A stretch of DNA of 64,000 bases, from NCBI GenBank assembly GCA_946965045.2, contig OX337237.1:682001-746000 (forward strand), given 5' to 3'. The stretch is from Epithemia pelagica (lineage: Eukaryota > Protista > Bacillariophyta). Position numbers and translations under genes: made by a program. Positions 21,570-62,760 of the stretch are shown here, in pieces (position 1 is the first letter of the stretch; each line of letters opens with the position of its first letter). A model generated the notes under the pieces. It ran no database searches. It saw only the letters and a list, made by a program, of their open reading frames with translations, and was not told where the DNA came from.

Positions 21570-21858
21570 ACATCATACTACACCTACCCCGTACTCAATC
21601 CCACAAACATGTGTTAGATCGGTGTTCGAGTTTTCTCGTCAACGATCTACCAGCTGTGGAACTCACAGACTCTACGCCTACGCCAAAACCTGAGAAACAA
21701 CGGTTTTGTCGATCGTGGACACAGTCCGTCTCCGAGTCAGTCTATACTTCAAAACCAGCGCAACAGTTTTGCAACACACAACCACGATCTTCTTACTTCA
21801 CCATCACCCATCCCAACTTATTTCTTAAGTTGTGGTGGTTGGATGAGACTGTTTTGCG

Positions 21859-28517: not shown

Positions 28518-28959
28518 CTGCCTGCTAGCATTTGGCGATATAGATGCAAAATGACCAATTATAGTACTGAAATGAATGGAGTTGTACTCCTCCCTCTTTT
28601 TGCCGCTGCGAGAAGTAGAAAGATCCAATGATGCCAGTATGAGAAGGACCTACATTCCGTCCACTCCCTCTTTTGGTCTCTCTCTCTCTCTCCTTTTTCG
28701 TTCTGTTGTTGATTCCTTCCAATCTAGGGGTTCAGGTTGGGGTTGTGTTACCGCCCGTTGTTCCTAGATGGAAGCCAACTTCTCGATGTCAACAACTACA
28801 TGGGTGAGTTGCTGCTCCGTCTTTCATGGAGACTCGACGTTTACTTGTTCTGTTGGGAATGGCCAAGCATGTTGGAGCAAACGCCATTTTTTGTTTCCTT
28901 GTCCTGTACGGATGGTGTGCATGTACTACCGTGCACATTGTGGTTAGTGTTGCTTTTTG

Positions 28960-29830: not shown

Positions 29831-30015
29831 AGTGCGTGTTTCACACGAAACCATGATGGTTTCAGTCGTAGCTCGGATGGAAAATTTCTATCGACTGCTG
29901 GTATCATTGAGTCTTTCTACGTTTCGCAGCGGCGAAAAGAGGGAAAAGTACAACTCCATTCATTTCAATACTATAATGGGCCATTCTACACAACAATCAT
30001 CAATACTGCGAACAT

Positions 30016-31134: not shown

Positions 31135-31599
31135 TTTTCATCCAACCACAATGGAAAAACAATGTTGGAATGGATGACGATGAAGGTGGTTGTTTGTTGC
31201 ACAACTGTTCCTCCAGTTTTGGAGTATAGACTGTCAGTTCCACGATCGGAGACTGCCACAAAACTCAGGTTTTGTGGTGTAGAGTATGATCGTTGACGAG
31301 AAAACTCGAAAATCCAGCACACATGGTTGTGGGATTGAGTACGGGGTAGGGGCGGTATGACACGAACCACCAGTTTGGGCTACGTTCTATTGAATCCTCC
31401 GAGTCCTCATTCCATGACGTAGACATTACGACTGGTGCAGTCGTCGTCCTGTCGTGGCTCTACGGCTTTGTTGGATATTCTGCCACTGAACGTCCCAAGA
31501 CTGAGTATGGGCTTTCGTGGGATAGTCTGTTCCGTTCCTCGTCTGCCGGTCAGACCCAAAGGATCTTCTCCACCAAACGACACGCGTTTTGCAAGTTTG

Positions 31600-34180: not shown

Positions 34181-34615
34181 TTAAGAGACTTTCAAACCCT
34201 GTGTAATGTTGCGAATACGAATGCAAGGCGGCAAGAGGGCTTTCGGTGGCCGAGTATCCAACAAAGCCCATGAAACACTGTATACCCACGACTGGAGCAG
34301 TCGCAATGCTTCCGTCATGGAAAGCTATTAGAGGTTTGGACGATGGATGTATTCCTACATCATACTGTCCTCCCTATTGTTCCCCCTTATGCAATGCCAC
34401 AAGATTTAGATCGACTCGCAGCTAGTTTTTCGAGTTTTCTCAAGCGACAAACTCTACACCAAAACCTCAGAAACAGCGCTTTTGTGGATCTCTCGCCTCG
34501 TGGCTCGTGGTACTGACAGACTTCACTCCAAAACCCTGTGCACCCAAAGCCCTCCTATCATCAGCAATTCCAACATTGTTTCTTCCATTGTGGTTGTGGA
34601 TGACACAGTTATAGG

Positions 34616-35764
34616 ATGGAGGATATGAAAGAGCAAGCACGTTTGTCCGGACTCGTTTTGGGGAACAATCAAGAAGCGCCCCAATGGATAACAAAACCAA
34701 GTAGAGTGTGTCAGCGATGGGACCACGCATTGGTTGTGGTAAATCCTCCCAGCAATGAAAAGGAAGAAATTATTGTCGTTTTGGGTGGCAGAAACCCCTT
34801 TTCTTCCAATAGCATCCATTCGAACGATACTAGATCTGTATTTCTCTTCAACGGTGATGGAAGCAGACGCAAGCAACGACGAGGTCCTAGGATGAACGAA
34901 CGGCGAGTTCGATTTGCAGCCGTTGTCTGTAACGGCTTTGTCTATGCCATTGGAGGATCGATGTTGGATTCCATAGAGCGGATTCAACTCTCAGATTTAC
35001 TATCAAGTGTGTGTTTGAAGAAGAGCCAACAGGAAAGGCCATGGAAAACATTGAAGTGCCGTTTGTCTACTACGGAGCGAGACTCGTGCTCAGCTACCGT
35101 TGTCCAAAACAGGTACATTGTAATTGGTGGAGGAAATAATGGAAATGTGGATATTGTTGACGTTTTTCAAGCAAGTCAACCTTTCATTTTTCAAGCGCCA
35201 TGCCTGAATGTTCCTCGTAACAAGTTCGGAATGGCGGCCGTTGGTTCGCGTGTCTATGTTATTGGTGGATGCACGATTAGTAGAGGAGAGGGGCAGTTAA
35301 GTTCAGTCGAATATTTGGATTTGTTGCCTGATTCAGGCAATGATGGAAATGATTTTGAAGAATCCACCCTTGCATCTTCTTTGTCATGGAAATTACACAA
35401 GGATCTGGTTCTTCCGATTCCTCGTTGTGAACATTCTGTTCTCTGTGTTGGATTTTGCCTGGTTGTGGTCGGAGGTTGTAGTGACTTTCGAACTAGTTAT
35501 GGACGTGAAGATGACAAGAAAGTGCGGGGCGTCGAGGTTTTCGACACGAGACGCAATAAAGTTTGGAGCCTTCCTGGCCTTCCGGACTTGAGGAAAGCAC
35601 GAGGCCCTGATCTTCAAGCGGTTTTTGTTTGCAATGAAATTCTTGTTCTTGTAGATGACATGACATTTTGCAAGACCTCGGAAAGGCTTCCATTGATGGA
35701 TAAGAATTCTGTCTTGTTCAAACGTTTGTTGGATGGTCCTTGTTTATTGAGAGAATTCAACTGA
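34616..35764 (+). CDS. Kelch-repeat protein K8 (382 aa, intact)
   Basis: Kelch architecture, close paralog of K6. Confidence 0.88.
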   Translation: MEDMKEQARLSGLVLGNNQEAPQWITKPSRVCQRWDHALVVVNPPSNEKEEIIVVLGGRNPFSSNSIHSNDTRSVFLFNGDGSRRKQRRGPRMNERRVRFAAVVCNGFVYAIGGSMLDSIERIQLSDLLSSVCLKKSQQERPWKTLKCRLSTTERDSCSATVVQNRYIVIGGGNNGNVDIVDVFQASQPFIFQAPCLNVPRNKFGMAAVGSRVYVIGGCTISRGEGQLSSVEYLDLLPDSGNDGNDFEESTLASSLSWKLHKDLVLPIPRCEHSVLCVGFCLVVVGGCSDFRTSYGREDDKKVRGVEVFDTRRNKVWSLPGLPDLRKARGPDLQAVFVCNEILVLVDDMTFCKTSERLPLMDKNSVLFKRLLDGPCLLREFN

Positions 35765-35999
35765 CTGTTAGCATTGGGCGATACATGTGTAAAATGACCC
35801 ATTATAGTACTGAAATGAATAGAGTTGTAGTATTCCCTCTTTTCAGTAGAAACATTCAATGATGCCAGAAATCTAGACTTTACCACTACAATGGAGTGAG
35901 CAGGATCTACATTCGGTCCACTCTCTTTCCGTCTCTCTCTCTCTCTCTCTCTCGTTTTTCGTTCTGTTGTTTGTTCCTTCCCCACTGGGTCATTCTTGT

Positions 36000-44141: not shown

Positions 44142-44971
44142 GTCCCTACCTACAAGGAGCGATGGATCATACCAGTTCCATTGGCCACGCCAATGGCATT
44201 CACTTCAAGGAAAGCGTCCCAGGTCGTTTCCAATTTGTTTTTGTTTTTCGTCCACAGTTTTGGATTCTCCACCCTGGCGGACAAGAGTGTCACGTGTGGC
44301 ATCACGTGATGGCACCCTGATTTCCTCCATTTCAGTTGTGGCCCGCAAAAGTCCTTGTTGCAGTTTTTGGAATCTGTTTTTGTGGATCGACTCTCTTGCT
44401 TGTGGATTGTTAATGAGAGCATGAAATTTCTTGACCCTGAAACAGAATGTTCCGAGGTTCACGTGGGATATTTGGTACGATATATTATTATATCAAGTCC
44501 AATACACTGATGTAGATGCGACCATTCAGGAATGCCTGTGCAACTCTTCCATTCGTGGACATGCAGCGAACTCGGCCGTTTCCAACCGTAACTGTTGTTG
44601 GATGCGGTGGTTCTCTCTTATGAAGAATCATTCGACGGAACTCTATGCATGGGGTACAAGACTAGTGTGTATCGAAGGATCCATTCATTCGTACACAAGG
44701 AAACAGATCCAATAATGCCATTCGTCGGGAGAATCTTTTTGTGGGACCCCTTTCCGCTGCCAACAAAAGACTACGGTCCATCGAAACCCTCCCATTGCCT
44801 ATAGTAGTAAGTATGACACGCACACCGTATTACTCTAATAAAACTACCTACCTATAGTCGTTTGACCCTCTTGTTTTCGTTTCAGTTGTCGTTGTCGTTT
44901 TTGGCGGGGGTGCCCTGGTTGTGTGTTTCTTGTTGTTGCTGTTGTCGTTCTTGTGGCAGTGGTTCTTATTC

Positions 44972-46276
44972 TTATCCCCGGGGCGTGGCAAAGCCATATT
45001 CGGTATTGTCATAGGGTTCCGGCAAGGGTTGTTTGACCAAGCCTTCGGCCTGTTCCTTGATGGACGCAAACATCTGAAAGTGTTGCACACGAGTAAAAAA
45101 TAGAAAGTCAATACCCACCAAAAATAATGTGAGTTCAGTGCCGCGTACACTGCAAAACCTCAAGCCAAACACGACATACAAACAGCCACAAAAACGAGCA
45201 ATCACAATCCATAGACGTACCGGATGGGTAAAGTATCGTTCTCCAAAACTGGGAATGATACAGACGGCCGTTTTCTGGGCCGATTCCGGTCGTTGACAGA
45301 CTTGGAGGGCGGCCGCGACAATGGCACCGGAACTCACACCCACGGGCAAGCCCGTCATCCACAATTCATTGGTCATGGCCATGGCCGTGTCGGACGAAAT
45401 GGGCACGACTTCGTCCAACACGTCCAAGTCCAAGACGGGCGGCACCAAGCCGGCCCCCATGCCTTGAATCTTGTGCGGACCTTGGGGACCAATCTTGTCA
45501 CCGCCCTTGGCGGCGGTAATCAACATTTGTTCTTGCGGTTCGACGGCGACGGTAACCAAGTTGGGATTGAGGGGCGGACAATTGTGATTGGCGGAACCTT
45601 TAATGTATTGCGAGACACCCGTCACGGTGCCACCCGTCCCCACACCCGACACCAACAAGTCAATCGTCCCATCGGTATCACGCCAAATTTCGGGTCCCGT
45701 CGTTTCGCGATGAATTTTGGGATTGGCGGGATTTTCAAATTGTTGCAACATGAATCCGTGCTTGCCGTCACGGTCCAAGTCGGCCAAAATTTCATGCGCC
45801 TTGGCCAAGGCACCGGGGACGGCCGTTTCCTTGGGCGTCAAGACCACTTGACAGCCCAACGCCAAGAGCATCATGCGTCGTTCGACCGACATGGTTTCCG
45901 GCATGGTCAAGATGCAGTCGTAGCCCCGTTCGCGGGCAATAAAGGCCAAGGCAATCCCGGTATTGCCCGAGGTGGGTTCCACCAAGGTTGTTTGACCGGG
46001 CGTAATCAAGCCATCGGCTTCGGCTTGATCAATCATGCTGCGACCCAACCGATCCTTGACGGAACTACAGGGACCCAAGGATTCCATCTTGCCATAGAGT
46101 TTGCAACCCTCGGCCAAGGGATGAGAAGCTTGCAACATGGTACCCAAATCCAACAAGGGAGTATTGCCCACGAGATCCGAGGGACGCGATGCCACATGCA
46201 GCAACCGTTGGCAGCTCGTCGTGGTCGTGGCGGCGGAAGCGGGGGTAGATGCTGGTTTGGACTGTCGACACCCCAT
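44972..46276 (-). CDS. cysK: Cysteine synthase (O-acetylserine thiol-lyase) A1, two exons, 385 aa, leader MGCRQSK
   Basis: SSVKDR (PLP Lys), PTSGNTG, QQFENPAN, TTGPEIW, GTGGT, IQGMGAG, ERY; intron 45074-45220 (CCG|GTACGT...CAG|ATG). Confidence 0.92.
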   Translation of the reverse strand: MGCRQSKPASTPASAATTTTSCQRLLHVASRPSDLVGNTPLLDLGTMLQASHPLAEGCKLYGKMESLGPCSSVKDRLGRSMIDQAEADGLITPGQTTLVEPTSGNTGIALAFIARERGYDCILTMPETMSVERRMMLLALGCQVVLTPKETAVPGALAKAHEILADLDRDGKHGFMLQQFENPANPKIHRETTGPEIWRDTDGTIDLLVSGVGTGGTVTGVSQYIKGSANHNCPPLNPNLVTVAVEPQEQMLITAAKGGDKIGPQGPHKIQGMGAGLVPPVLDLDVLDEVVPISSDTAMAMTNELWMTGLPVGVSSGAIVAAALQVCQRPESAQKTAVCIIPSFGERYFTHPVRLWIVIARFCGCLYVVFGLRFCSVRGTELTLFLVGIDFLFFTRVQHFQMFASIKEQAEGLVKQPLPEPYDNTEYGFATPRG

Positions 46277-47080
46277 GATGCTCCTCTTTTTCCCTCTCCC
46301 ACAATTATGGAATGCAGCAATACGTCACTCGGGTCCGTCTCTCTCTCTCTCTCTCTCTCGCTTGTTTCCGGCCGAGGGAGAGTTTCTCGAATGGGTTGCG
46401 AAAGCAGGCGGGTGCAACTCTCTAAAAGGATTCGAAACCCAAGATCCAATCTTTCTTACAGTAACGACAGAGTGGTGTGGATCGAACTAACTGTCGTTGT
46501 CGTCGTTGTCGTCTCGTGTCAAAACAGCGTGGGCAACCTTATTTTTCTTCAAGACCCAAGATACACCCAAAAAGATACGTATGCCTGTTCATCAATTCAC
46601 CGAAAGGAGGAAGACGACGACGGGTGTGTATCATCGTCGTCAGAAAAGATATCTCGCGGGGAATCTTTTCGCATTATATGCGACCTATGAGCCACTGCGC
46701 GTCATGCGTTCTCTTCTTGTCTAGCCGTTACGGTTACGGCTCGAGGTAGCTTAGCAACCACGACACTTGACAGGATATAGCAACCGGAGGAGAAGAATCA
46801 TCGCCACAGACAGTGCGAATGAACCCCATTGGAAACACATTGATAAGACAGTTTCGGGCAGATCATCATTTCTCGTCCCATTAAAAAAATGGCACCACCA
46901 AATCCACGGAGAATGGTCAAGTCCAAACGGAAACATATAAAGAGAATCCAAAGCATAGCTAGCAGCTATATCAATGGACCATTTACCACAGTCCTAGGAG
47001 TACTCTATATTGTATGATTTTTGTGCTGGTGGTGGTTCGTCATGGAATACACACACATATCGTCTCGCGCAGAAAGACTG

Positions 47081-47681
47081 CAACTTCCGGTAACTACACG
47101 TGAGTCGCATATTCTCTCCCAAAACCCAACGGACGAAACCAAAACAAAAGATCGATATTCATACAAAGTACGTATTATGATACCGTAGAATATGATTTAC
47201 CATTCTCTAGTATGGAACAAACGGGAATGTCGAAAGGTATGTCGTTTGTATGTCGTTTGTATGTCGTTTGATGTTGTTTGATGTCGTTTGATGTCGTTTG
47301 ATGTCGTTTCGGGCTCGCGCGCAAACATGGTTTGCCTCAAAATCCAGCGGTGCTCCTTCAGTTGATGGGCTTTCCGTCAATCAGTGACTTGAAACCTTGT
47401 GATTTCTCGTGAAGAATCCCATTCGCTGGAGAGTACATATTCTTTTGGCGATAAAAACATCCGACATCATCCGACATCATCCGACATCCTCCGACATCAT
47501 CCGACATCTACCAAATCCTCCGACATCCGTGACTCTGGATGTTTTCCTCATATTAAAATAATCTGTACCTAGTATGATCATATAAGAGGTATTACTGTGT
47601 GAAAATTAAAAATGTTATATCGTGACGATACTCTGAGTAGTAGAAGGATTACCTATGTTTTGAGTCCATAACCGGAAGTTG
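47081..47681. mobile_element. MITE-2 (601 bp): 13-bp TIR, 3-bp TSD, inverted subterminal 10-bp repeats (CACTA/CMC-like layout)
   Basis: CTG|CAACTTCCGGTAA ... TAACCGGAAGTTG|CTG; (ATGTCGTTTG)n at ~47238-47310 and (CATCCGACAT)n at ~47457-47525 share an inverted ATGTCG core. Confidence 0.75.
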
Positions 47682-47706
47682 CTGAATCTACTCCAAATCT
47701 TTGTTA

Positions 47707-49741
47707 TTAGTACCCTCGGGCCGTATGAAATCCATACTCCCGATTGTCGTAGGGTTCCGGCAAGGGTTCCTTGCTCAGGGCTCAGGGCCTGTGTCCAGGG
47801 AATGTGTTTTTGAGTTCTGAAATCGAGTCAATAGGTTATGGTCCCCTTGAAAACTCGAAAACACAACCTCGAATCCCCCAAATCTTGGCAATCCCCCAAC
47901 GACCTTGCCAAGATTCTGAAATCGAGTTTCGAGTTTCGAGGTTTGCAAAGAGCCCCACGCGCTCCTACAAAACCCACCTTTCAGCCGCCGGGCTCTCTGT
48001 CTCTCATTTCGATCTCTCCGACAACAACAACGAGGCAATCTCTCTTGTCCATCATAGACAATAGTAGCACAATGATTGATGTGATATAAGTAGGAGCTTC
48101 TCTAGAAAATAAGCAAGTATTATTAACCTGTCGCTGCCATGGAAGTAATGGTCACAACCACTGTCAATGGTCAAAAGCAAATAATTCTCATCTCTCCATA
48201 GATGACATGGTTACGGAACAAAGCCCGCATCCTGCTCCATGGACGGGCTCTACAAATATTCTACCTTCTCCCGTTATGCAATGTGATATTAGGAATTAGG
48301 AGTACTCAAGCGACATTTGTTTGTTGTCATTGTCAATTGCCGTTGTGCTCGTTCATGCGCCGGTAGGGGGGAAGCATGGGAGTGCACGAGTATTGAAAAA
48401 TAAAACTCGAAACTCGAAACTCGAAACTCGAAAATACAGTTTTTACCTGGACACGTACATCCAGATCGTTGTTTCAAGGGAGGGACAGAGCCCCACCTCA
48501 AAACTCGGAACTCGATTTCAGACCTCGAAAACACATTCCCTGGACACAGGGCCTCAATTCTTCCGCTTGTGCCTTGACATGAGAAAACATCTGGAATAGT
48601 CACAAAACACAAACACACAACAACAAAGAAAAAGAGAACGTGGCATGTGTCAGAGTGACTTTCTCGTGTGCGCTGTCCGCAACCAACCAACCACAGCGAC
48701 CACCAAGTGCACACAGATAGGCACAGGATCGTGCGGACGTACCGGATGACTAAAGTATCGTTCTCCAAAACTGGGCAAGACACAGACGACGGTTTTATTT
48801 GCCGATTCCGGTCGTTGGCAGACTTGCAAGGCGGCCGCGACATTCGCACCCGAACTCACGCCCACGGGCAAGCCTTTGAGCCAGAGCTGTTTGGTCATGT
48901 TCATGGCGAGCATGGAATGAATGGGTACCACCTCATCAATCAAGTCCAAATCCAATACTTTGGGAATCACACCGGCCCCCATGCCTTGAATGAAATGAGG
49001 ACCAATCTCTTGCAAGGGTTCTCCTCCCTTGGCTTGGGTAATCAACATTTGTTCCCGGGGTTCCACGGCAATGGCTTGCAACTCCGGATTCTTGGGAGGA
49101 CAGTCGTGTTCGGCCGAGCCCTTAATGTATTGCGTGACACCGGTCAGTGTGCCACCCGTCCCAACGCCAGCCACAAAAATATCAATGGTTCCCGCCGTAT
49201 CTCTCCAAATTTCGGGATCCGTCGACTCTCGATGGGCTTTGGTATTGGCTGGATTGTCAAATTGTCGCAACAAGTAGCCGGTGCCCTTACAATCGGCCAC
49301 GACTTGTTCGGCCTTGGCCAGGGCTTCGACCATGCCAGCCTTTTTGGGCAGAAGGACGACATTGGCACCCAGTGCCAAGAGCATGAGGCGACGTTCCATG
49401 GTCACTGATTCCGGCATGACAATGGTACATTTATAGTCACGTTCGCGTGCCAACATGGCAATGGAGATGCCCGTATTACCCGACGTGGCTTCCACCAAAG
49501 TCGTTTCACCTCGTATAATCAATCCCTTGGCTTCGGCATCGTCCAACATAGTACGAGCAATCCGATCCTTGACCGAATTGCAGGCATTGAAGGCCTCCAA
49601 TTTGCCATAGAATTTGCACCCATCGGCGAGTTTTTCGTCGGAAAAGACGTGATTGCCCAAATCCAACAAGGGCGTTTTGCCAATCAAGTCGGAGGGACAA
49701 GAGGCCACATTCAAGGATGTACCGGATTCTCCATTCATCAT
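47707..49741 (-). pseudogene. cysK: Cysteine synthase B1, last exon interrupted by MITE-3
   Basis: NSVKDR, ATSGNTG, GVGTGGT, ERY. Exon 1 49741-48743, intron to 48591, exon 2 MFSHVKAQAEEL split from SKEPLPEPYDNREYGFHTARGY* (stop 47707-47709). Also has STDPEIW instead of TGPEIW. Confidence 0.85.
47785..48553. mobile_element. MITE-3 (769 bp), PIF/Harbinger-like termini, TCA target duplication
   Basis: TCA|GGGCCTGTGTCCAGGGAATGTGTTTT...CTGAAATCGAGT and ACTCGATTTCAG...AAAACACATTCCCTGGACACAGGGCC|TCA; internal (AACTCGA)n and (GAGTTTC)n repeats; an extra gggctca at the left flank. Confidence 0.85.
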
Positions 49742-49809
49742 TTTAATAGCTGCTGTGTCGGTGGTCGTAGATTTGGTTTCGAATTTCTGATCGGATCAGA
49801 TTATGAGAG

Positions 49810-49850
49810 GAGCACCCCTAGCATAAAAAATTCTGCCTAAAAGTGTCTCA
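49810..49850 (+). mobile_element. Truncated left arm of a putative DNA transposon (GAGCACCCCTAGCATA...)
   Basis: 15/16 inverted match to 56173-56188; the same arm continues further at 62580. Confidence 0.55.
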
Positions 49851-50058
49851 TTCGGGTCGCTACGGATTGGGTACGTCATCATGACGTGTAAGGGACTAAT
49901 GACCAAAGGGAATGGAACGGTCATTATCGGTTACCTACTTACTGGTTTTATGCGTTGGATGTTATGGTTAATCCTACTTAGTCTTTCTTTGGAACGGATT
50001 CTATCAAGTAGAATAAGACAGTTTATCAGACCCACCGTCTGGTAAAGGAGAACGAAGA

Positions 50059-51276
50059 ATGGCTACATCGACACGATCGAATACGAAAACTGCAACTGCA
50101 AGTGGAAGGAGCGGAAGCGGAAGCGGAAGCGGAAGTGGAGGCGGAAGCGGAAATGGGAACCCCGGGGCCACGGGGAATGGGGAAGGAGATCGTACTTCAC
50201 GCCATGGCGCGAGTATGGGAACGGGAGCGGGAGGGAGTGACCCGCCAGGAGGTGTACCTGGAACGAGAGGAGGAACCGCAGCAGGGACAGCTGCAGGAGC
50301 GGCCCCGGGAGTGGCGGCACCAGGTGGTGCGCCTGGGACTGGCGCAGGAAGCGCCGGAACGGGAGGTGCCGGCGGTGGCGCCGGTGCAGGAGGTGGTGCG
50401 CCGGGAGCAGGAGGAGGCGGACATGGTGGCGGTGCCGCAGGAGGCGGAGGCGGCGGCGGTGCTGCAGGAGGAGGTGCAGGAGGAGGTGCAGGCGGCGGCG
50501 CTGGAGGCGGAGGAGGAGGAGCAGGCGGTGGTGGCGCTGGAGGAGGAGGAGGAGGTGGAATACCTCCAGGCGTTCCAGCACCACCACCACCCCTCTCTGC
50601 TGTGGGAATGGCACTTAGTGTATGTGGCGCGAATCCTTTCGAAATATACGCCCTAGAACATACCGAACGCCTTAACACCCTAGAGTCATATGGAAGAATG
50701 ACATCGGATGACGTGACCCAACTGGTGTCGAGGCTGGAAAAGCGCCCGTACCCGCACAACGTGGCAATTCCTTCAAGCGTCGTAAAGAACATTCAAGGAA
50801 TGTGCTTCTGGTCAGCCAGAGCGCGTCGTCAAGGCCGTCCGCTTAACTACGGAGACTTCATAACCGCTGTCCTAGCTGAATCCCTGGACGCGATGGAGAT
50901 CCAGTCGGAGAAATCCTCTGCACCTGATATTAAGCCCTCTGCCCTCAAGGAAGAAGAATGGGAGGACTGGAGTCAAGAGTTCCCAACGTACCTGTCGCAT
51001 ATCTATGGAAAACAGAAGGCACCATTGGACTACGCGATTCGTCCCGATTTAGCGCCTACCCATGTCTTTGCAAGCACTAGGGAACAAGAGCTCTATAGCT
51101 ACCCTCTAGGTGGGCCGTACTTCAAAGAGGACAACAAGGAAGTATTTCGGCTATTGAGTGACCTTGTCAAGGATCAGCCTGCAACGTGGATTCAGCCTTT
51201 CCAGGCTTCACAAGATGGTCGACGCGCATGGATGGCATTGGTCGATCATTTTGATTGGGGGGGGGGGGGGGGGGGG
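50059..51276 (+). mobile_element. Truncated gag-like ORF of a second, diatom CoDi-type copia family, with Gly-rich N-terminus
   Basis: WEDWSQEFPTYLSHIYG..APLDYAIR, LGGPYFKEDNKEVFRLL and DGRRAWMALVDHF are recalled as typical of diatom copia gag; similarity stops at a 20-G run (51257-51276); no pol or second LTR. Confidence 0.7.
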
Positions 51277-51381
51277 ACAGAGTGTTTGTCGAGTCATTGG
51301 TGGCGAACTGTACAAACCCACAGTCGACAAAGAGAACCAGGAAATCTTGGAACGTGATGACATGGCGGATCTACTCCATGA

Positions 51382-51441
51382 CATCCACGAATTTGCCTAA
51401 GCATCCATGAATTTGCCATAGCATCCATGAATTTGCCAAAG
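51382..51441. repeat. 20-bp tandem repeat x3 (CATCCAyGAATTTGCCnnAG)
   Basis: Read directly; no spacers. Confidence 0.9.
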
Positions 51442-51528
51442 AACTACATACGAGAACAAGAAATCACAAAGCACCACATTCCATATTAGTAATCTTTCAA
51501 TTTGCCACTACTCTTGACTCCGTCAGTA

Positions 51529-54500
51529 CTACTGCTTTGTTCCTGTAGAATTCCCCCCCTCTGTCGGTGCATCCAAGACAATAGGCTGTCCTTTCGCATC
51601 AGTGACCGGACCATGTACGATATCACATTCTTCTTCCTCCTCCTCATACCATTGACGAGGTTCCAAGAATTCCCACTTATCCAATTCCTCTAAATCACGG
51701 GTGTCTTGTTCCGACCAACCTGGTCGTTTCATGGCCAGTTGTTTGGCTTCCTCGGTTAGAAACTTACAATACTAAACACTCCCACCTGAATCTCGTACCC
51801 AGTTTGTCCATTCCACTAGTTTGTCATCTTCCACAGTATTCAAGTCGTTCATGATCTCGTCGTATTCGTATCCACACATAAACACCATCCTTCTCTGAAG
51901 CCAGCGAGCCATTGGCTCGAGACGACTCCTTTTCCCCTGCCCTTGATTAGTAGCACCGCCGCGTTGGGTTCTGGAAAAGTAAAAGCGCTTGAATAAGCTA
52001 TTGAAAGCTACCGTCATTGTAAATGGTTAGACACCAAAGAGACATGGGCGATCACGGTCGATCCACTCACCTTCCCATCCTTGTTGGGCATGTGAACTGA
52101 GATTCCGCCAATGCAGAAGATACTCAGTCACATGCCCACTGCCTATCATATGCGCATAGTTTGTGATTCCTCGTTCACCATGCAAGTCAACCCATCTCGA
52201 AAAAAACTCGTCCGCAACACGTTGATATTCGTAGATTTCCTCATCTGTCATTTCGTTCTTATTGTTCACAAGCTTCATAGACTTGGCATAATATTCAACA
52301 CTTTCGATCCATGTCTTTCGTCTGCTCTCATCTGGGCAACACAGATCAATCAGAATCTTGAATCCATTCACTATCCTTCGGATTCGGACATTATCCATGC
52401 AGATCGTTGTTATTGCCTTTGCTTTCTCGTCGTACGGCATTTTCCATTGCGTCGGGAATTCCTCAGATCCAAGAACAAGAGTATTAAGATTCCTGTTGAC
52501 TGTATCTTGAAACTCTTGTATCCTCGCGTCCATGCCCCCCTCAGCTTCTTTATTGATCCAACTAAGCTCATCGCTCTTCGTATACTCCAGGCCTTCTCGG
52601 AGAATCATTGTTAGTAGCTTCAAGCCCATTCGGTTCTCCATATGAAGGATGCAAGGAATTGCATCCATCATATAAACCAAGGCCGTTGTCTTTTTTGAGT
52701 CCTTGAATTGATCCTTGACTCTCTGTGCTTGATGATACCACCACTCCTTGACGTGTGATGATTTTAGCCCTTTCTGTCGATCCTCCAAAGAACCGGAGAT
52801 ATCGAGGCCTCTAGCAGTCAAGTCATTCGTCAAAATCTTTGCGTATTCTCTCCGTTGCTCTAAAGAGGCCACACTCAAGTCGAAATGAACACTTTGCAAA
52901 CTCCCTTTCTCCATTCCCGACGCAACACATCTAGGATCTTGCTGTATAATGACTTGCAACACATCTAGGATCTTGCTGTATAATGACTTGCGATTTAGCC
53001 CAGATCGATTTCATCGTCTTTGCTATGATAGGTATCTCCTTGATGAATTCAGTTATATCCTCCTCAACTTGTTGGATGTGTTCTTTAGAACAGATCTTGT
53101 GGTGTTGACAGATCCAGTTCTTTCTCTCGTCGTTGCCTAGCTTAACACAGATCTTGCATTCGGAAGCCGGTTGTGTCTCAGCATGTAACTCACCACTTTG
53201 AACGACACATTTAGAACAAGGGTAGGTAACTTGTTGAGCTGCCCCACCTCGGCCGAACAGTTTCCATTCACAGCTCATGTTGCAGTTTGTGGAAATCGTG
53301 AGTTGTAAAATCCCAAATTTCGTGGGAAGTACAATCTTCGCCCCTTCCTTGATCTCTACCATCATCATCCGGAACAGAGACCTGACCAATGACTCGGACT
53401 CTTTCTGACACACGCATAAGATCGGGAACACGCTGTGCCGTGATTGGCCCAGTAGATTGCAGATGTCGTTGAATTTCAGTCCACCCAGAACATGTCCGAG
53501 GTTCTTTGTAAACAAAGCCCCGTCCAAGCTCTGTGATAGGTAAATTGATCGTTCCTTGGCTTCTCCGCCAATCAAATTACCTGCCACCAGGATTGCTGCC
53601 ATCACATCCGCCGCACGAAACGTGAAGCCTTCTGCTCCTGTTTCTTTGTTCCGTAGCATTCTGTAAGGGCATAGTAGGGCCTCAAATCTGTTCACTTCTG
53701 CCGCGCAGTTCTGCATGCAAGAGGTGCTTGGCAGTAGAGTTTGTTGATACAGCACTCCGTCAGTTTCTACGGATCGTAGATACTCCAACCCGCGGAAGTT
53801 TAGTGGTCCTCCCGCCAAGTCCATCGCGCGTAGGATCTTGTACGGCGTTAAAACATTTTCTCTAACGTACTTGCGGAACACATTGTAGGTGGCTTTGAAC
53901 AATTGCCCGCCGTGTATTGTCTTGTCGAGTAGCAAAGACCCGATGTCCGTTAAAAAAGATGCTGCTTGATGACTTGTTGTGTCCATCTTTGATACCTTGG
54001 AAGTGATGAACTTGTGTAGGTAAGTCAGCAGAGTCGTCTTATCTTCTGGGTCGTAACATGACTTTGGTAGTTTGTCCGTTTCATTCTTCTCCTGTTGTGC
54101 TAGCTTTGCTTCGCGGAGCTCCTCTCGAGTTTCCTTGACGATCTTTTCCCAATACCGAAGCCTCTCACTTTTCTTCTTGGACTGCAGACGACAGTCCTTC
54201 AGCTTCGAAAGCATCGAGGTGAGTTTTTCTTTGAGGTGAACAACTTGTTTAATTAACTTCTCACGCTCTCTATCCTCTATTGTGTTGTCCTCGTGTGGAC
54301 AATCTTCCTCTTGCAGGTTCATTTCAGTTGCCCTCAGCCATTCGTCAAGGTCGGTTTCGTCATCGTCCTCTTCTTCGTCATCTACCACTGTCTCTACGAT
54401 TGGGCTACTGTGAACGGATTCTCTTGATTCCGGTGTCATTCCAATGCCTGTATTGGGTTCGGCATTGGGTTCTGTCCTTGAAGACTTGGTGTCGTTCTTC

Positions 54501-55651
54501 TTCGTGTCGTCGGAGGCAACCGTCGTTTCGTCCATGTTGACTGGATTACTTGGCGGATTTGTTGACTTAGGAGGATCATCCTCTACTGTGGTGTTGGTGG
54601 ATGAAGGGAAGGGGGGTACTAGATCGACTGAAGCTGGTTCTGGAGCTTGTTCAGCAATCTCGGGAAGAGTTTTGTCCTTGTCCAAGTCTCTGACATTCTC
54701 AGTTGGGGCAGGTAATTGCTTGTCACGCTTGGCTCGTCGGATTTTGGTCCGTTTGATAGGCTCGGGTTCTTCAATAGGCTGGCAAAATAATTCAGCCGGA
54801 GGCGGTTCGGGTATGTATTGAGAATTCTTGTGTCGGAAGGTTGGGCTCCACATGTTGGTGTGTTCTGCTGTGCATTTATAGCGGCCGCCGACGATGGTCC
54901 GATTAATATAATGGCCAGGCCGTGAACCCTGTTCTCGATCAGCCTTGTCGCAGTTGTTACAAAAGAAGTAACCCCTGTGTGCCTGTTCTCGGTCGCGACC
55001 GTAAACCGAGCACGGTACAAATTCTGATTTAAGGAACGTCTTACAGATTTCTGCAATTCTTTTTCGCTCTACAGAGTTGGATTCGCATGGAACTTCAGAT
55101 GCACGTCTTCGTGCTCGAGTTTGCATGTTCGGCGACGCTTGAAGTTTTAAATCTCTCTCGATCTGTTGGATTTCTTCGGGAGATGGTTGGCGACAACCGT
55201 CGGGTTCGTCACTGGTTGAAGTGGAGCTGGTAGTCTGGCAAAGCTGACAGGGTGCTTCGTCAGTCAACTGTTCTGCAGGACTGGTTACTGGATGATGGTC
55301 TTCATTATTGGGCGACTCTTGGAGATCGACAACGCCATCAATCTGCGAATTTTCTTCTTGAGATGATGGACGAAGTCCATTTGGTTCAACACTTGTTGGG
55401 GCCAATCCGGCAATTCGGCAAGATTTGCGAGATGGTTCTGCAATCGGAGGGTTAAGCGATGCTTCGGGAACAATGTCTCTCCCAATCTGCTGACGGTTTT
55501 CTTGAGGTAATGGGCAAGGTCCATCGAATTCGACACTTGTTGCTGCCAGTCCGGCAATCCGGCGAGATTTTCGAGATGGTTCTGCAACCGGAGGGACTTC
55601 TGAAGTGTGATGGGCCTAGTTTGGGCGCTTCTTCGATGCACGGGTAGGCAT
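51529..55651 (-). pseudogene. RAG1-core/Transib/Chapaev-like DDE transposase, decayed (~1340 codons)
   Basis: ATG 55651 (MPTRASKKRPN*); TAG at 55616-55618; SLDGA; TNCNMSCEWKLFGRGGAA...YPCSKC; DAIPCILHMENR; ITNYAHMIGSGHV; QQGWE|AFNSLFKRF across intron 52008-52070 (GTGAGT...CTAAC...TAG); 34-bp tandem duplication 52922-52989 causing a frameshift; TAG at 51772-51774. Removing intron and duplication gives 4026 nt, a whole number of codons. Confidence 0.72.
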
Positions 55652-56172
55652 AGTGTATGTAAGATGAGATAAAGCCGCTGTTATTGTGAAATACAAGTCG
55701 TTATCTCATGGTCATACCTCCAGGGTCCATGTTGGAGGGAGGTTGGTCGGCAGGTGGTAGATGAGATCAAAGCACGATTAATAGGCGACTACTATGTTAT
55801 ATATCATACAACGCTGGATATATTTTATACTCAAGACTGGGGTGGCGCGCATTGGGCTAGGGGAGGGGCCTGGAAAACCAATGAATGAACAAGGCCGCTG
55901 TATTGTCGTCCGTATAACTTTACGAATATTTGCTACTTTTGTCAAGTAAGTATACCGTTGGATTCTTGAGACAAAAAGGAATCAGATGCAAGTGTTACCT
56001 GACAATTGTAGCCATTAATGGGTGAGTGGTAGTGCGTTGAAAATGGGTCAGTCTTTTGAGGCCAAAAATTGGGTCTTATATTTAACAAAAATTCATCCAT
56101 ACAATACTCCAGAGTGACAGAAGCGTTTCTGGTGTGTCTGTTGTACGTAGTTTCGTCATCCCGCGCGCACTA

Positions 56173-56188
56173 TATACTAGGGGTGCTC
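56173..56188 (-). mobile_element. Putative right terminal inverted repeat (TATACTAGGGGTGCTC)
   Basis: Reverse complement GAGCACCCCTAGTATA versus GAGCACCCCTAGCATA at 49810 and 62580; lies ~540 bp upstream of the transposase ATG. Confidence 0.55.
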
Positions 56189-57643
56189 GTATTGTATTGA
56201 ATCTCTGTCTGTGAATGTTGGTGTCAACGTCCAGTGATCTTCCGTGTAGTTGAGGGAAGGAGCCATTTTTCATTTTTCAGAGCTACCTAAACTACCTAAA
56301 CTTCAAAACCTAAGTTTCACCTAAACTTCTTTAGAAACTACGCTAAAAATCTGAGTACCTAAGTTTGATAGCCCTATTTGAGACGCCAATACGCGAACAG
56401 GCCTTTCGACGGGTCATTTCCATTCGTTCCATTCCATTCCTTGGCACCAAACGTGTGAAGGCATCACTGTAGATCAATCAGTACGATTGGGTGGCGATTG
56501 TGCGTTCTGATTCGTTACCATGTGTGTTTCACTGTTCGCGCGCCATCCGGTCGCCACTGGGCCATGTTTTTGCGTTATTTGTTATGACGATGCCAAACCC
56601 ACATTGGCCGGACGACGCCACCATGTTGCTCTGCTTGTTTCGTTCTCTTCTTTCCCACACCATCACAACACACAACAATAACGCATAGCACACTACAAAA
56701 GCAACGTTTAGAATACTCGTAGCAATTTGAGTGAGTCAAGCTTGACTCATCGTTCTGAAACGTTTGCTGCATGCAAAAGTAGGCACTAAAACTATCTTTC
56801 CCAAACACACTGACCGGCCATGTCTCTACCTACAAACACGGAGCGATGGATCCTACCAGTTCCATTCTAGTCACGACAATGGCATTCACCTCACCCATCA
56901 GGCAAGGAATCGAGTAAGTGTCCCAGGTCGTTTCCAATGCTTGTTCCGCCCAGCACTGTATTTTGGAGTGGCGGACGAGTCTATCACGTTTGGCATGACG
57001 GTTCAACCTGTGTTCCTCTGTCATTTTGCGTCCCTCTTGCATTCTTTGTGGGGTCTTATCGACTCCTTTTTTCATGTGCATGCCTTTCCTTGACACTGCA
57101 ACAGAACTCTCTCTATAGATCAAGTCCAATACACTGCAAATGTGACCATTCTTAAGGAATGCCTGTGCAACCCTTCCAATATACTCGTATTGGTGGACAT
57201 AGTACGTTTCCAAGCGTAGCTGCTGTTGGATGCTGTGCTCCTCTCTAGTAGTCCTTGGACTGTATTTTTGCATGGAATGAGAATATACAAGGATCCATTC
57301 GTACTGCCTACTATAGAATGAAGTGAGGTTCATCTCCCTGTGTTTGCCGCTTCATGCGAGAGAGAGACCCTAGAGAATGTCATTGGTCGGGGAAAAGTTC
57401 ATTCGGGGCAACCCCCTTTCCGCCGCCATCAAAAGACTATGGTCCATCGAAACCCTCTCATTGCTTATATAGTAGTATGACACGCACACCGTATTACTCT
57501 AAAACTAGTCGTATGGCCCTCTTGTTTTCGTTTGATTCGTCCTCCGTTTCTTGTGGGAGTACAGTGGTAGTGTGTGTTTCTTGTTGTTGTTGTTGTTGCG
57601 GCTGCTGTTGTTGTCGTTCTTGCTGTTGTGGTAGTTCTTATTC

Positions 57644-59096
57644 TTATCCCCGGGGCGTGGCAAAGCCATACTCGGTATTGTCAAAGGGTTCCGGCAAGGG
57701 TTGTTTGACCAAGCCTTCGGCCTGTTCCTTGATGGACACAAACATCTGTGGTTCGTCATTCGTGACCAAACCATAAAGACAGCGACACCCAAAACACCAC
57801 ATTCCGATCCATGCACACACACATGTTTGAGCAAGGTTGTTCCAAATACTATACTAGATCCAGAGCATCGATCAATTCCAACACGAGCCAGTAGACTCCA
57901 AACGCACACAAACACAAACCCCTGCTGGCACACTCTATAGAGCCACACAGACATACACACATACATACACACACAGACATAACAAGACTGATTCGACGTA
58001 CCGGATGGGTAAAGTATCGTTCTCCAAAACTGGGAATGATACAGACGGCCGTTTTCTGAGCCGATTCCGGTCGTTGACAGACTTGGAGGGCGGCCGCGAC
58101 AATGGCACCGGAACTCACACCCACGGGCAAGCCCGTCATCCACAATTCATTGGTCATGGCCATGGCCGTGTCGGACGAAATGGGCACGACTTCGTCCAAC
58201 ACGTCCAAGTCCAAGACGGGCGGCACCAAGCCGGCCCCCATGCCTTGAATCTTGTGCGGACCTTGGGGACCAATCTTGTCACCGCCCTTGGCGGCGGTAA
58301 TCAACATTTGTTCTTGCGGTTCGACGGCGACCGTGTATAAGTTGGGATTGAGGGGCGGACAATTGTGTTGTGTGGAACCTTTAATGTATTGGGACACGCC
58401 CGTGACGGTGCCACCCGTCCCCACACCCGACACCAACAAGTCAATGGTGCCATCCGTATCCCGCCAAATTTCGGGACCCGTCGTTTCGCGATGAATTTTG
58501 GGATTGGCGGGATTTTCAAATTGTTGCAACATGAATCCGTGCTTGCCGTCACGGTCCAAGTCGGCCAAAATTTCATGCGCCTTGGCCAAGGCACCGGGGA
58601 CGGCCGTTTCCTTGGGCGTCAAGACCACTTGACAGCCCAACGCCAACAACATCATGCGTCGTTCGACCGACATGGTTTCGGGCATGGTCAAGATGCAGTC
58701 GTAGCCCCGTTCGCGGGCAATAAAGGCCAAGGCAATACCGGTATTGCCCGACGTGGGTTCCACCAAGGTTGTTTGGCCCGGTGTAATCAAGCCATCGGCT
58801 TCGGCCTGGTCAATCATGCTGCGACCCAACCGATCCTTGACGGAGCTACAGGGACCCAAGGATTCCATCTTGCCATAGAGTTTGCATCCCTCGGCCAAGG
58901 GATGAGAAGCTTGCAACATGGTGCCCAAATCCAACAAGGGTGTATTGCCCACGAGATCTGAGGGACGCGATGCCACATGCAGCAACCGTTGGCAGCTCGT
59001 CGTGGTCGTGGCGGCGGCGGCGGCGGCCAAGGATGTACCACGCCATACGGACGTTTTGGCGGAGGAGGACACTGCGGAAACCACCAATCGGTTCAT
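57644..59096 (-). CDS. cysK: Cysteine synthase A2, two exons, 398 aa, mitochondrial-like leader
   Basis: Core nearly identical to A1; intron 57746-58001; leader MNRLVVSAVSSSAKTSVWRGTSLAAAAA. Confidence 0.92.
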
Positions 59097-59849
59097 TCTT
59101 GTTGTGTGCGGCAGAGAGACTTTTGCTTTTGTGAGTGTCTGCTCAAGAGAGTGGAGAGACTAGAAGCTGCTGTTTTCAAGGAAGCAACCAAAAAAAGGAT
59201 TCGAAACCCAAGATCCAATCTTTCTTACAGTAACGACAGAGTGGTGTGGATCGAACTAACTGTCGTTGTCGTCGTTGTCGTCTCGTGTCAAAACAGCGTG
59301 GGCAACCTTATTTTTCTTCAAGACCCAAGATACACCCAAAAAGATACGTATGCCTGTTCATCAATTCACCGAAAGGAGGAAGACGACGACGGGTGTGTAT
59401 CATCGTCGTCAGAAAAGATATCTCGCGGGGAATCTTTTCGCATTATATGCGACCTATGAGCCACTGCGCGTCATGCGTTCTCTTCTTGTCTAGCCGTTAC
59501 GGTTACGGCTCGAGGTAGCTTAGCAACCACGACACTTGACAGGATATAGCAACCGGAGGAGAAGAATCATCGCCACAGACAGTGCGAATGAACCCCATTG
59601 GAAACACATTGATAAGACAGTTTCGGGCAGATCATCATTTCTCGTCCCATTAAAAAAATGGCACCACCAAATCCACGGAGAATGGTCAAGTCCAAACGGA
59701 AACATATAAAGAGAATCCAAAGCATAGCTAGCAGCTATATCAATGGACCATTTACCACAGTCCTAGGAGTACTCTATATTGTATGATTTTTGTGCTGGTG
59801 GTGGTTCGTCATGGAATACACACACATATCGTCTCGCGCAGAAAGACTG

Positions 59850-60460
59850 CAACTTCCGGTAACTACACGTGAGTCGCATATTCTCTCCCAAAACCCAACG
59901 GACGAAACCAAAACAAAAGATCGATATTCATACAAAGTACGTATTATGATACCGTAGAATATGATTTACCATTCTCTAGTATGGAACAAACGGGAATGTC
60001 GAAAGGTATGTCGTTGGTATGTTGTTTGTATGTCGTTTGATGTTGTTTGATGTCGTTTGATGTCGTTTGATGTCGTTTTGGGCTCGCGCGCAAACATGGT
60101 TTGCCTCAAAATCCAGCGGTGCTCCTTCAGTTGATGGGCCTACCGTCAATCAGTGACTTGAAACCTTGTGATTTCTCGTGAAGAATCCCATTCGCTGGAG
60201 AGTACATATTCTTTTGGCGATAAAAACATCCGACATCATCCGACATCATCCGACATCCTCCGACATCATCCGACATCATCCGACATCTACCAAATCCTCC
60301 GACATCCGTGACTCTGGATGTTTTCCTCATATTAAAATAATCTGTACCTAGTATGATCATATAAGAGGTATTACTGTGTGAAAATTAAAAATGTTATATC
60401 GTGACGATACTCTGAGTAGTAGAAGGATTACCTATGTTTTGAGTCCATTACCGGAAGTTG
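59850..60460. mobile_element. MITE-2 second copy (611 bp; one extra 10-bp repeat unit)
   Basis: CTG|CAACTTCCGGTAA...TTACCGGAAGTTG|CTG, a perfect 13-bp TIR in this copy. Confidence 0.77.
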
Positions 60461-60485
60461 CTGAATCTACTCCAAATCTTTGTTA

Positions 60486-62511
60486 TTAGTACCCTCGGGC
60501 CGTATGAAATCCATACTCCCGATTGTCGTAGGGTTCCGGCAAGGGTTCCTTGCTCAGGGCTCAGGGCCTGTGTCCAGGGAATGTGTTTTTGAGTTCTGAA
60601 ATCGAGTCAATAGGTTATGGTCCCCTTGAAAACTCGAAAACACAACCTCGAATCCCCCAAATCTTGGCAATCCCCCAACGACCTTGCCAAGATTCTGAAA
60701 TCGAGTTTCGAGTTTCGAGGTTTGCAAAGAGCCCCACGCGCTCCTACAAAACCCACCTTTCAGCCGCCGGGCTCTCTGTCTCTCATTTCGATCTCTCCGA
60801 CAACAACAACGAGGCAATCTCTCTTGTCCATCATAGACAATAGTAGCACAATGATTGATGTGATATAAGTAGGAGCTTCTCTAGAAAATAAGCAAGTATT
60901 ATTAACCTGTCGCTGCCATGGAAGTAATGGTCACAACCACTGTCAATGGTCAAAAGCAAATAATTCTCATCTCTCCATAGATGACATGGTTACAGAACAA
61001 AGCCCGCATCCTGCTCCATGGACGGGCTCTACAAATATTCTACCTTCTCCCGTTATGCAATGTGATATTAGGAATTAGGAGTACTCAAGCGACATTTGTT
61101 TGTCGTCATTGTCAATTGCCGTTGTGCGTTCATGCGCCGGTAGGGGGGAAGCATGGGAGTGCACGAGTATTGAAAAATAAAACTCAAAACTCGAAACTCG
61201 AAAATACAGTTTTTACCTGGACACGTACATCCAGATCGTTGTTTCAAGGTAGGGACAGAGCCCCACCTCAAAACTCGAAACTCGATTTCAGACCTCGAAA
61301 ACACATTCCCTGGACACAGGGCCTCAATTCTTCCGCTTGTGCCTTGACATGAGAAAACATCTGGAATAGTCACAAAACACAAACACACAACAACAAAGAA
61401 AAAGAGAACGTGGCATGTGTCAGAGTGACTTTCTCGTGTGCGCTGTCCGCAACCAACCAACCACAGCGACCACCAAGTGCACACAGATAGGCACAGGATC
61501 GTGCGGACGTACCGGATGACTAAAGTATCGTTCTCCAAAACTGGGCAAGACACAGACGACGGTTTTATTTGCCGATTCCGGTCGTTGGCAGACTTGCAAG
61601 GCGGCCGCAACATTCGCACCCGAACTCACGCCCACGGGCAAGCCTTTGAGCCAGAGTTGTTTGGTCATGTTCATGGCGAGCATGGAATGAATGGGTACCG
61701 CCTCATCAATCAAGTCCAAATCCAATACTTTGGGAATCACACCGGCCCCCATGCCTTGAATGAAATGAGGACCAATCTCTTGCAAGGGTTCTCCTCTCTT
61801 GGCTTGGGTAATCAACATTTGTTCCCGAGGTTCCACGGCAATGGCTTGCAACTTCGGATTCTTGGGAGGACAGTCGTGTTCGGCCGAGCCCTTAATGTAT
61901 TGCGTGACACCGGTCAGTGTGCCACCCGTCCCAACGCCAGCCACAAAAATATCAATGGTTCCCGCCGTATCTCTCCAAATTTCGGGACCCGTCGACTCTC
62001 GATGGGCTTTGGTATTGGCTGGATTGTCAAATTGTCGCAACAAGTAGCCGGTGCCCTTACAATCGGCCACGACTTGTTCGGCCTTGGCCAGGGCTTCGAC
62101 CATGCCAGCCTTTTTGGGCAGAAGGACAACATTGGCACCCAGTGCCAAGAGCATGAGGCGACGTTCCATGGTCACTGATTCCGGCATGACAATGGTACAT
62201 TTATAGTCACGTTCGCGTGCCAACATGGCAATGGAGATGCCCGTATTACCCGACGTGGCTTCCACCAAAGTCGTTTCACCTCGTATAATCAATCCCTTGG
62301 CTTCGGCATCGTCCAACATGGTACGAGCAATCCGATCCTTGACCGAATTACAGGCATTGAAGGCCTCCAATTTGCCCTAGAATTTGCACCCATCGGCGAG
62401 TTTTTCGTCGGAAAAGACGCGATTGCCCAAATCCAACAAGGGCGTTTTGCCAATCAAGTCGGAGGGACAAGAGGCCACATTCAAGGATGTACCGGATTCT
62501 CCATTCATCAT
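60486..62511 (-). pseudogene. cysK: Cysteine synthase B2: premature stop plus MITE-3 in the last exon
   Basis: ATG 62511; TAT-to-TAG at 62377-62379 (codon 45); same MITE insertion as B1. Confidence 0.87.
60564..61323. mobile_element. MITE-3 second copy (760 bp)
   Basis: Same TIRs and TCA flanks as 47785-48553. Confidence 0.85.
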
Positions 62512-62579
62512 TTTAATAGCTGCTGTGTCGGTGGTCGTAGATTTGGTTTCGAATTTCTGATCGGATCAGATTATGAGAG

Positions 62580-62760
62580 GAGCACCCCTAGCATAAAAAA
62601 TTCTGCCTAAAAGTGTCTCAATACCAACACCCCTGGCCTCAAAATTTCTTCCATATCGCCAGCCCGCACACCAAAAGACTGGCCGACTACTAATTTGCTC
62701 GCCCGGCGTCCTTAAATAGAACATTTTTGGTTCCCACTACCACAACTCATTTCATTAGTA
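62580..62760 (+). mobile_element. Left arm of the putative DNA transposon (uninterrupted copy)
   Basis: TIR GAGCACCCCTAGCATA plus subterminal TGGCCTCAAAA (62634) and CAAAAGACTG (62672), both present inverted at 56049-56064. Confidence 0.55.

Follow-up and report, generated by a model that had tools for sequence, protein, structure and literature searches.

The 64,000-nucleotide window that we analyzed (contig OX337237.1 of the Epithemia pelagica assembly GCA_946965045.2, positions 682,001 to 746,000 of the forward strand) contains, at 49808-56194, what is very probably the dead remnant of a raphid pennate diatom's cut-and-paste DNA transposon of ~6.5 kb, and one that belongs to a divergent lineage of the CACTA-Mirage-Chapaev-Transib (CMCT) clade. 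The window copy is one member of an undescribed transposon family whose intact elements carry a transposase gene (~1350 aa) and a convergent partner gene (504-578 aa). The transposase is predicted to have the fold of RAG1, the enzyme that assembles antibody genes and that arose from a transposase. The spread and timing of RAG1-type enzymes are still debated, and this family places a RAG1-type fold in diatoms, in a form that is invisible to sequence searches.

The transposase pseudogene lies on the minus strand (55651-51529) and is spanned by three minus-strand open reading frames (ORFs; 55405-52931, 824 aa; 52962-52027, 311 aa; and 52017-51772, 81 aa), which are separate because of a 34-bp duplication and a 63-nt intron. 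Removal of these two leaves a single reading of ~1341 codons (4123 - 34 - 63 = 4026 nt, or 1341 codons plus the stop). The family-typical start, MPTRASKKRPN, is at 55651, in frame upstream of the ORFs. The predicted intron (52008-52070, minus strand; GTGAGT..TAG, with GT..AG ends, phase 1) joins QQGWE to AFNSLFKRF. Gene calls of most homologues end by reading into the intron; two homologues, P0015 and P0017, have no intron and read straight through. The N-terminal part of the gene contains two copies of the 22-residue unit PPxAEPSRKSxRIAGLAxTSVE, 48 codons apart (55385-55594, minus strand), and a Cys/His cluster (PCSVYG…FFCNNC…KCTAEH; 54860-55015, minus strand) in which C, C, C, C and H are invariant in 13 family members. 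The repeated unit is also present in the intact copies P0190 and P0192, and thus it is a feature of the subfamily and not damage.

The gene has several lesions. A premature TAG follows the start at codon 12 (55616-55618, minus strand), where the intact copies and a tandem paralogue (described below) have CAG (Gln); the allele, L007, also has TAG. A second premature TAG, in the C-terminal tail (51772-51774, minus strand), is common to the allele and the paralogue, and the corresponding codon is Glu in the intact copy L005. The 34-bp duplication is a perfect tandem duplication (52922-52989, minus strand; units 52922-52955 and 52956-52989) that shifts the reading frame; it is present in the allele and absent from the paralogue (L001) and from contigs of public runs. 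A G-run near 51553 contains one extra G, which shifts the last ~25 codons, so that the stop at 51529 is not the ancestral stop. Lastly, at the second catalytic position, just after predicted beta4, the codon is AAC (53279-53281, minus strand), giving Asn for Asp (TNCNMS in place of the family's TNCDMS); the allele, the paralogue and the intact copies all have GAC. Judging from the two stops, the 34-bp duplication, the G-run frameshift and the Asn, together with the loss of a tip and the replacement of the partner gene described below, the window copy would be unable to move or to produce enzyme. Intact copies are present on other contigs: P0190 and P0192 (97% identical) have the Asp, Gln at codon 12, Glu in the tail, and no stops.

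Relatives of the transposase are numerous. A search with the core found 17 homologous proteins (42-98% identity), none with a Pfam domain, and in a profile search run exhaustively the cluster representatives numbered at least 2301 at E<=1e-3 and 287 at E<=1e-30. For one relative, the annotation gives a Bacillariaceae metagenome-assembled genome as its source. A word-indexed search with a 54-sequence alignment of the core added no further relatives and no annotated proteins. In that alignment (residue numbering as in P0017:332-1066), the invariant residues include D184 (SLDG), C287 and C290 (PCxKC), C310, C329, H476, H640 and H646, and residues kept in >=90% of the sequences include D266 (TNCDMS) and E666 (QQGWE). 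In the window copy, the first catalytic Asp (SLDG) is at 53522-53524, the predicted C(2)C zinc-ligand pair (PCSKC) at 53207-53218, an additional Cys/His cluster (ECKIC … WICQHHKIC; C307 and H331 kept in >=90%) at 53090-53161, the predicted H(5)H zinc-ligand pair (NYAHMIGSGH) at 52132-52152, and the catalytic Glu (QQGWE) at 52072-52074, all on the minus strand.

These results bear on a sequence-only reading of the stretch that preceded our analysis. That reading had joined the split ORFs into one ~1340-codon gene by setting aside a 63-nt intron and a 34-bp duplication, and the gene is reproduced at 1341 codons. Each of the motifs that it had picked out (SLDG, YPCSKC, DAIPCILH, TNYAHMIGSGH and QQGWE) is present, and in the 54 homologues they occupy invariant or near-invariant columns, which argues that they are conserved motifs of the family and not chance matches. 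It had called the copy inactive on the basis of the Asn at 53279-53281, the TAGs at 55616 and 51772, and a frameshift, and each of these lesions is real. Its description of an N-terminus unlike that of RAG1 also holds, and the intact copies with Asp at the NCxMS position that it proposed to look for in the genome are P0190 and P0192.

The boundaries of the element are given by alignment to an intact copy, 6556 bp long, that is of the same subfamily as the window copy (L005 5458-12013). The transposase side of this intact copy matches window 56210-51282 at 96% identity, and at its partner-side end the final 34 bp correspond to 49841-49808, so the whole decayed copy, which we call A1, is ~6.39 kb (49808-56194, minus strand). 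The transposase-side terminal inverted repeat, CAATACGAGCACCCCTAG (56177-56194, minus strand), is flanked by A, and the same 18-mer ends L005. On the partner side, a 34-bp terminal remnant (49808-49841, minus strand) has kept the repeat core CTAGGGGTGCTCCT and is missing the last 4 nt (ATTG). Inverted repeats bound both L005 and a copy in L003. The ends of the family are CAATAC(C/G)A(A/G)CACCCC and CAATAGCAGCA, that is, 5'-CAATA…TATTG-3', and they are not CAC-initial in the manner of the heptamer of a recombination signal sequence.

A sister element, B, provides the clearest view of the insertion mark. Element B (6.2 kb; L001 15248-21457; in the window from 62619 on) is 61% identical and lies directly after the A copy in L001. 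It is bounded by perfect 18-bp inverted repeats, CAATACCAACACCCCTGG, and frameshifts split both its transposase gene and its partner gene. It sits inside the second tandem copy of A, 40 bp from the end of that copy: in the window, the end of B (CAATACCAACACCCCTGG; 62619-62636, plus strand) is followed by the terminal remnant of that copy at 62578-62611. The matching site next to copy A1 is unoccupied (TGAGA; 49846-49850, minus strand). Comparison of the filled site in L001 (…cccgaaTGA[B]AGAcactt…) with this paralogous empty site in the window (…cccgaaTGAGAcactt…; TGAGA) indicates that one A was duplicated. An A is present on both flanks in three independent elements: B, L003 7445-13556 and L005 5458-12013. 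A 5-bp duplication at B (TGACA/TGAGA, with one mismatch) was considered and rejected; the inverted repeat is two bases longer, and L003 and L005 have no 5-bp repeat.

Two further observations concern the outer flank on the transposase side. The 15 bases beyond the terminal repeat show partial similarity between two independent insertions, L005 (5443-5457, gacagGTttCAcgA) and the window copy (56195-56210, gacagAGattCAatA), which hints at a target preference. In addition, a contig in two public runs matches the flank up to the junction at 56195 and then, at the transposon tip, continues with 30 letters that are absent from the window. This could be the empty site of a differently arranged haplotype, or it could be another copy of the flank.

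The partner gene is conserved in L002, L003, L005 and L001-B, with 33-40% identity between subfamilies. In the window copy, the 1.7 kb due to hold this gene has been replaced by 1.4 kb of unrelated DNA (49842-51282, plus strand), which holds a Gly-rich ORF (50059-51357). All that is left of the true partner gene is its last 40 codons (…LLHDIHEFA; 51278-51397, plus strand), which match the end of L005's 504-aa partner at 88% identity. On this comparison, the convergent Gly-rich ORF of the window copy is not the family's partner gene. The true partners of L002, L003 and L001-B match no Pfam domain, Kelch models included, and in this respect show no likeness to RAG2; a language-model search with the L002 partner returned no match.

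The region of the partner gene has other features. The Gly-rich ORF (432 aa, plus strand) matches no Pfam model, and in a language-model search it matches only unannotated clusters of ~240 aa. A 2-base difference in a G-run near 51277 shortens the window version relative to that of the allele (447 aa). Three tandem 20-nt units (CATCCAYGAATTTGCC…; 51382-51441) overlap the last codons and the stop of the partner remnant and reach into the spacer before the end of the transposase gene. RAG2 is a Kelch propeller, and L005 contains a gene for a 371-aa Kelch beta-propeller (2443-3558, minus strand); this gene lies beyond the intact copy's terminal repeat, ~1.9 kb away from it, and is probably a host gene.

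The predicted structure of the transposase core ties the family to RAG1. An AlphaFold model made from 12 sequences was mediocre (predicted local distance difference test, pLDDT, 70) and matched only RAG1, RAGL and Transib. The model made from 54 sequences reached a pLDDT of 91 and a predicted template modelling score (pTM) of 0.85, and in a Foldseek search of the PDB its top 49 matches were all RAG1, BbRAGL or HzTransib, with E down to 1.5e-10. In VIA-align comparisons, HzTransib (6pqx_A) aligned with a Z score of 21.1 over 413 of 480 residues (86% of the chain) at 4.3 Å, RAG1 with Z of 17-21 over up to 534 residues, and BbRAGL with Z of 19.4. The longer RAG1 alignments extend into the region of its nonamer-binding domain, and the alignment spans model residues 1-720 against RAG1 390-1008. 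ISCth4 gave a Z of 8.8. D184 lies on beta1 of the model, D266 directly after beta4, and E666 opens a helix (663-679 in the model) past a long insertion domain; as predicted, this placement is the canonical RNase H-like Asp-Asp-Glu (DDE) layout. A language-model search with the transposase likewise returned RAG1 clusters, at 0.90-0.92.

The sequence-only reading had described the gene as a RAG1-core-related DDE transposase and as Transib-like. The first part is borne out by both Foldseek and VIA-align, and the Foldseek comparison with RAG1 and Transib structures that it had proposed gave only RAG1, RAGL and Transib among the top 49 matches. The P and hAT families, which it had named as placements that would contradict it, score far below the Z of 19-21 seen with RAG1 and Transib (P element, 11.6; Hermes, a hAT transposase, 7.4). 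The second part is too narrow: CACTA transposases fit equally well, and the motif pattern is found throughout the wider clade. Thus, the models support a RAG1 fold for the transposase and do not single out Transib.

To our knowledge, the PDB contains no structure of a CACTA, Mirage or Chapaev transposase, so the ranking of PDB matches is unable to separate the branches of the clade. A fold search limited to the PDB overstates likeness to RAG1, because CACTA-type enzymes have the same fold. A fold search of the ESM Atlas, which compares predicted with predicted structures, found plant clusters in which 100% of members carry Transposase_21 (CACTA/EnSpm), with a template modelling (TM) score of 0.54 over 484-501 aligned residues, and a Transib-like cluster with RAG1_RNase_H at a TM score of 0.51. 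The CACTA-type clusters that match the model also carry DUF4218 and Transpos_assoc. The best rows of this search were unannotated clusters from rotifers and Mucoromycota. Since predicted CACTA/EnSpm transposases fit as well as the Transib-like ones, we place the family in the wider CMCT clade and not in Transib. As defined by Kojima 2025, this clade comprises EnSpm/CACTA, Mirage, Chapaev, Transib, Plavaka, ESTA as well as Lanisha, which have in common a C(2)C pair after the second D and an H(3-4)H pair before the E, and which mostly have CA..TG termini and 2-5 bp duplications (PMC12730594). The C(2)C and H..H pattern is therefore an argument for the CMCT clade and not for Transib. The best-supported placement of the diatom family is as a new, very divergent lineage of this clade; the defining features of Transib and RAGL do not support its membership in either.

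Two narrower placements have to be weighed against this one. The family might be a true member of the Transib/RAG1-like branch, with RAG1 and Transib as closer kin than the CACTA-type enzymes; on that view it would be a stramenopile offshoot like the RAG-like element of Aureococcus. We consider this rather unlikely. Every best match among solved structures is indeed RAG1, RAGL or Transib, with HzTransib at Z 21.1 over 86% of the chain, but that ranking does not discriminate in a database without CACTA, Mirage or Chapaev, and predicted CACTA transposases fit at least as well. The RAG1 clusters in the language-model search and the RAG1L/RAG2L transposon known in the pelagophyte Aureococcus (PMC9435367) also speak for this branch. 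Against it, the elements have neither the 5-bp duplication nor the CAC-initial, heptamer-like ends that define the branch, there is no RAG2-like partner, Pfam models of RAG1 domains find no match, and the His pair is H(5)H and not H(4)H as in RAG1.

Alternatively, the family could be a divergent transposon of the CACTA/Mirage/Chapaev (CMC) type, in which the likeness to RAG1 is simply that of the whole clade. CACTA elements also encode two proteins. The Atlas clusters with Transposase_21, DUF4218 and Transpos_assoc (TM 0.54 over 484-501 residues) and the CA..TG termini are in keeping with this possibility, as are the C(2)C and H..H motifs common to the clade (PMC12730594). This placement, too, seems improbable to us: no member of the family matches Pfam Transposase_21 or DUF4218 at E<=10, the ends differ from CACTA, the duplication falls outside the range of 2-4 bp, and the TM gap to the Transib-like cluster (0.54 vs 0.51) is too small to weigh. 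The copy has host cysteine synthase genes as neighbours within a segmental duplication, which could suggest a decaying host gene or a domesticated transposase instead of a transposon remnant, but this is extremely improbable given that the family's inverted repeat bounds the copy, that many diverged and near-identical copies lie on different contigs of the same assembly, that one exact site either holds the sister element or lacks it, and that stops and frameshifts accumulate in the window copy.

Several results weigh against our reading of the element as a divergent CMCT transposon. Pfam searches of the window pieces and the 54 homologues found nothing relevant even at E<=10, with the RAG1 and Transposase_21 models included, and the DUF4218 and Transpos_assoc models likewise had no match in the 54 members at that threshold. 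HMMER searches of all PDB sequences with single sequences and with profiles found no RAG1, Transib or other relevant match. The proposed homology is based on predicted structure and motif order, with no sequence-level tie to any known transposase. The one-base duplication, which is based on one paralogous empty site and three pairs of flanks, is not distinguishable from no duplication combined with a preference for A, and the ends of L002 are ambiguous. Finally, no activity, transcript or spliced RNA has been observed; a look for RNA runs found none, and the public-run contigs are DNA assemblies.

We postulate how an intact element of this family would work. Such elements are bounded by 18-bp terminal inverted repeats and encode a ~1350-aa transposase and a convergent partner protein of ~500-580 aa. 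The core of the transposase would be an RNase H-like DDE enzyme with one Asp on beta1, a second after beta4 and the Glu on a helix past a large insertion domain, and its C(2)C and H(5)H pairs would occupy the positions of the RAG1 zinc ligands. By analogy, the transposase would nick the DNA at the CA tip, and the free 3'-OH would attack the opposite strand, leaving a hairpin on the flank. Attack of the excised ends on the target would follow, staggered by about one base, and would produce the single duplicated A.

The order in which the window copy decayed can be proposed from its relatives. The window contains a tandem segmental duplication with a period of 12.7 kb (44142-49850 vs 56822-62620) that includes two cysteine synthase (PALP) genes and the transposon copy; the two units are 96-99% identical over most of their length and ~80% identical at the far end. 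Contig ctg1308l of the same assembly is collinear with the window at 99% identity and, from the alignment, is best read as the other haplotig. We considered copy A in L001 as the allele of the window copy and rejected this: as L006 and L007 show, that copy of A is in fact the tandem paralogue (A2), and L007 holds the true allele. The tip loss, the replacement of the partner gene, the G-run frameshift and the TAG at 51772 are common to the window copy and A2. By this comparison, the loss of the tip and of the partner gene, the C-terminal TAG and the G-run frameshift preceded the 12.7-kb tandem duplication. The TAG at 55616 and the 34-bp duplication are present in the allele and absent in A2, and they arose after it; A2 has an additional stop of its own and received element B 40 bp from its end. 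The last event was the change from Asp to Asn, found in the window haplotype only. The allele on the other haplotig has GAC at the second Asp and yet has the same stops and duplication, which argues that the Asn arose in a gene that was already dead. Contigs from three public DNA runs of the same organism have the undamaged variant at each lesion site, although these contigs may come from other copies and are no proof of the absence of the damaged variants.

The host belongs to the raphid pennate diatoms. The flanking cysteine synthase shares 86% identity with one from Epithemia clementina, and the next named matches are from Seminavis, Nitzschia and Thalassiosira, all diatoms. Elsewhere in the window there is a repeat of ~1.4 kb, with at least 8 copies on both strands (5768-7155, 11040-12497, 12679-14148, 18670-19956, 21745-23132, 27347-28720, 29850-31226 and 34586-35981). 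Its copies are mostly 72-77% identical, and two pairs are 87-89% identical.

The dead window copy is of no functional importance; it is useful for its dated series of lesions and because it supplies the empty site with which the nested sister element B can be compared. We speculate, tentatively, that diatoms have a separate deep lineage of RAG1-fold transposases that integrate with a stagger of one base and require a conserved partner with no relation to RAG2. If so, an enzyme with RAG-type cutting would have recruited a helper subunit independently of the pairing of RAG1 with RAG2. If, in addition, the lineage were found to branch nearer to RAG1 and Transib than to CACTA, RAG machinery would be pushed deep into the stramenopiles.

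Among known systems, HzTransib (6pqx, 6pqn), the RAG1 core (6cg0, 4wwx) and BbRAGL (6b40) are like the diatom family in the predicted fold of the whole core (Z 19-21 over 413-534 residues), and the diatom family departs from them in its ends, its insertion mark and its partner gene. As in RAG1 and Transib, the Asp, Asp and Glu are on the canonical RNase H elements, the C(2)C pair is ~21 residues past the second Asp, and the His pair is 20 residues before the Glu; intact diatom elements also have a convergent second gene, as do RAG-like transposons. In contrast, the diatom enzymes have no similarity to RAG1 or Transib that HMMER or Pfam can detect, and from the second Asp to the Glu their core is longer by ~146 residues, among them the additional Cys/His cluster. 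Their His pair is H(5)H where that of RAG1 is H(4)H, and their N-terminus, unlike that of RAG1, has basic repeats, a CCCCH cluster and a coiled coil. The ends are CAATA and not the CAC of Transib and RAG, and one base is duplicated instead of 5 bp. The partner proteins of L002, L003 and L001-B, unlike those of RAGL elements, match no Pfam model, Kelch models included.

In the literature searched, no report of RAG1-like or Transib elements from diatoms was found, and the nearest case is AanRAGL of the pelagophyte Aureococcus anophagefferens (PMC9435367). Like the diatom family, AanRAGL is a two-gene transposon of a stramenopile alga with a RAG1-fold enzyme. In AanRAGL, however, the RAG1L and RAG2L genes are recognisable and share one orientation, the duplications are 5 bp long and the bipartite ends are CAC-initial (PMC9435367); the diatom family has none of these features.

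The comparison with the CMCT clade is closer in some respects and not in others. The CAATA termini and one-base duplication of the diatom family differ from the CAC(TA) termini and 2-4 bp duplications of CMC elements, and its duplication is also outside the 2-5 bp of the clade as a whole (PMC12730594). The family is further set apart by its diatom host, by the absence of sequence similarity to any named lineage, and by a partner gene that is conserved and unrelated. The spacing of its His pair is five residues, whereas that of the clade is three or four, and its C(2)C pair agrees with the clade (PMC12730594). The 5'-CA..TG-3' termini are alike, as is the predicted CACTA fold (TM 0.54). Lastly, the diatom family resembles ESTA in that both are recognisable solely through structure-level similarity to RAG1 (PMC12730594).

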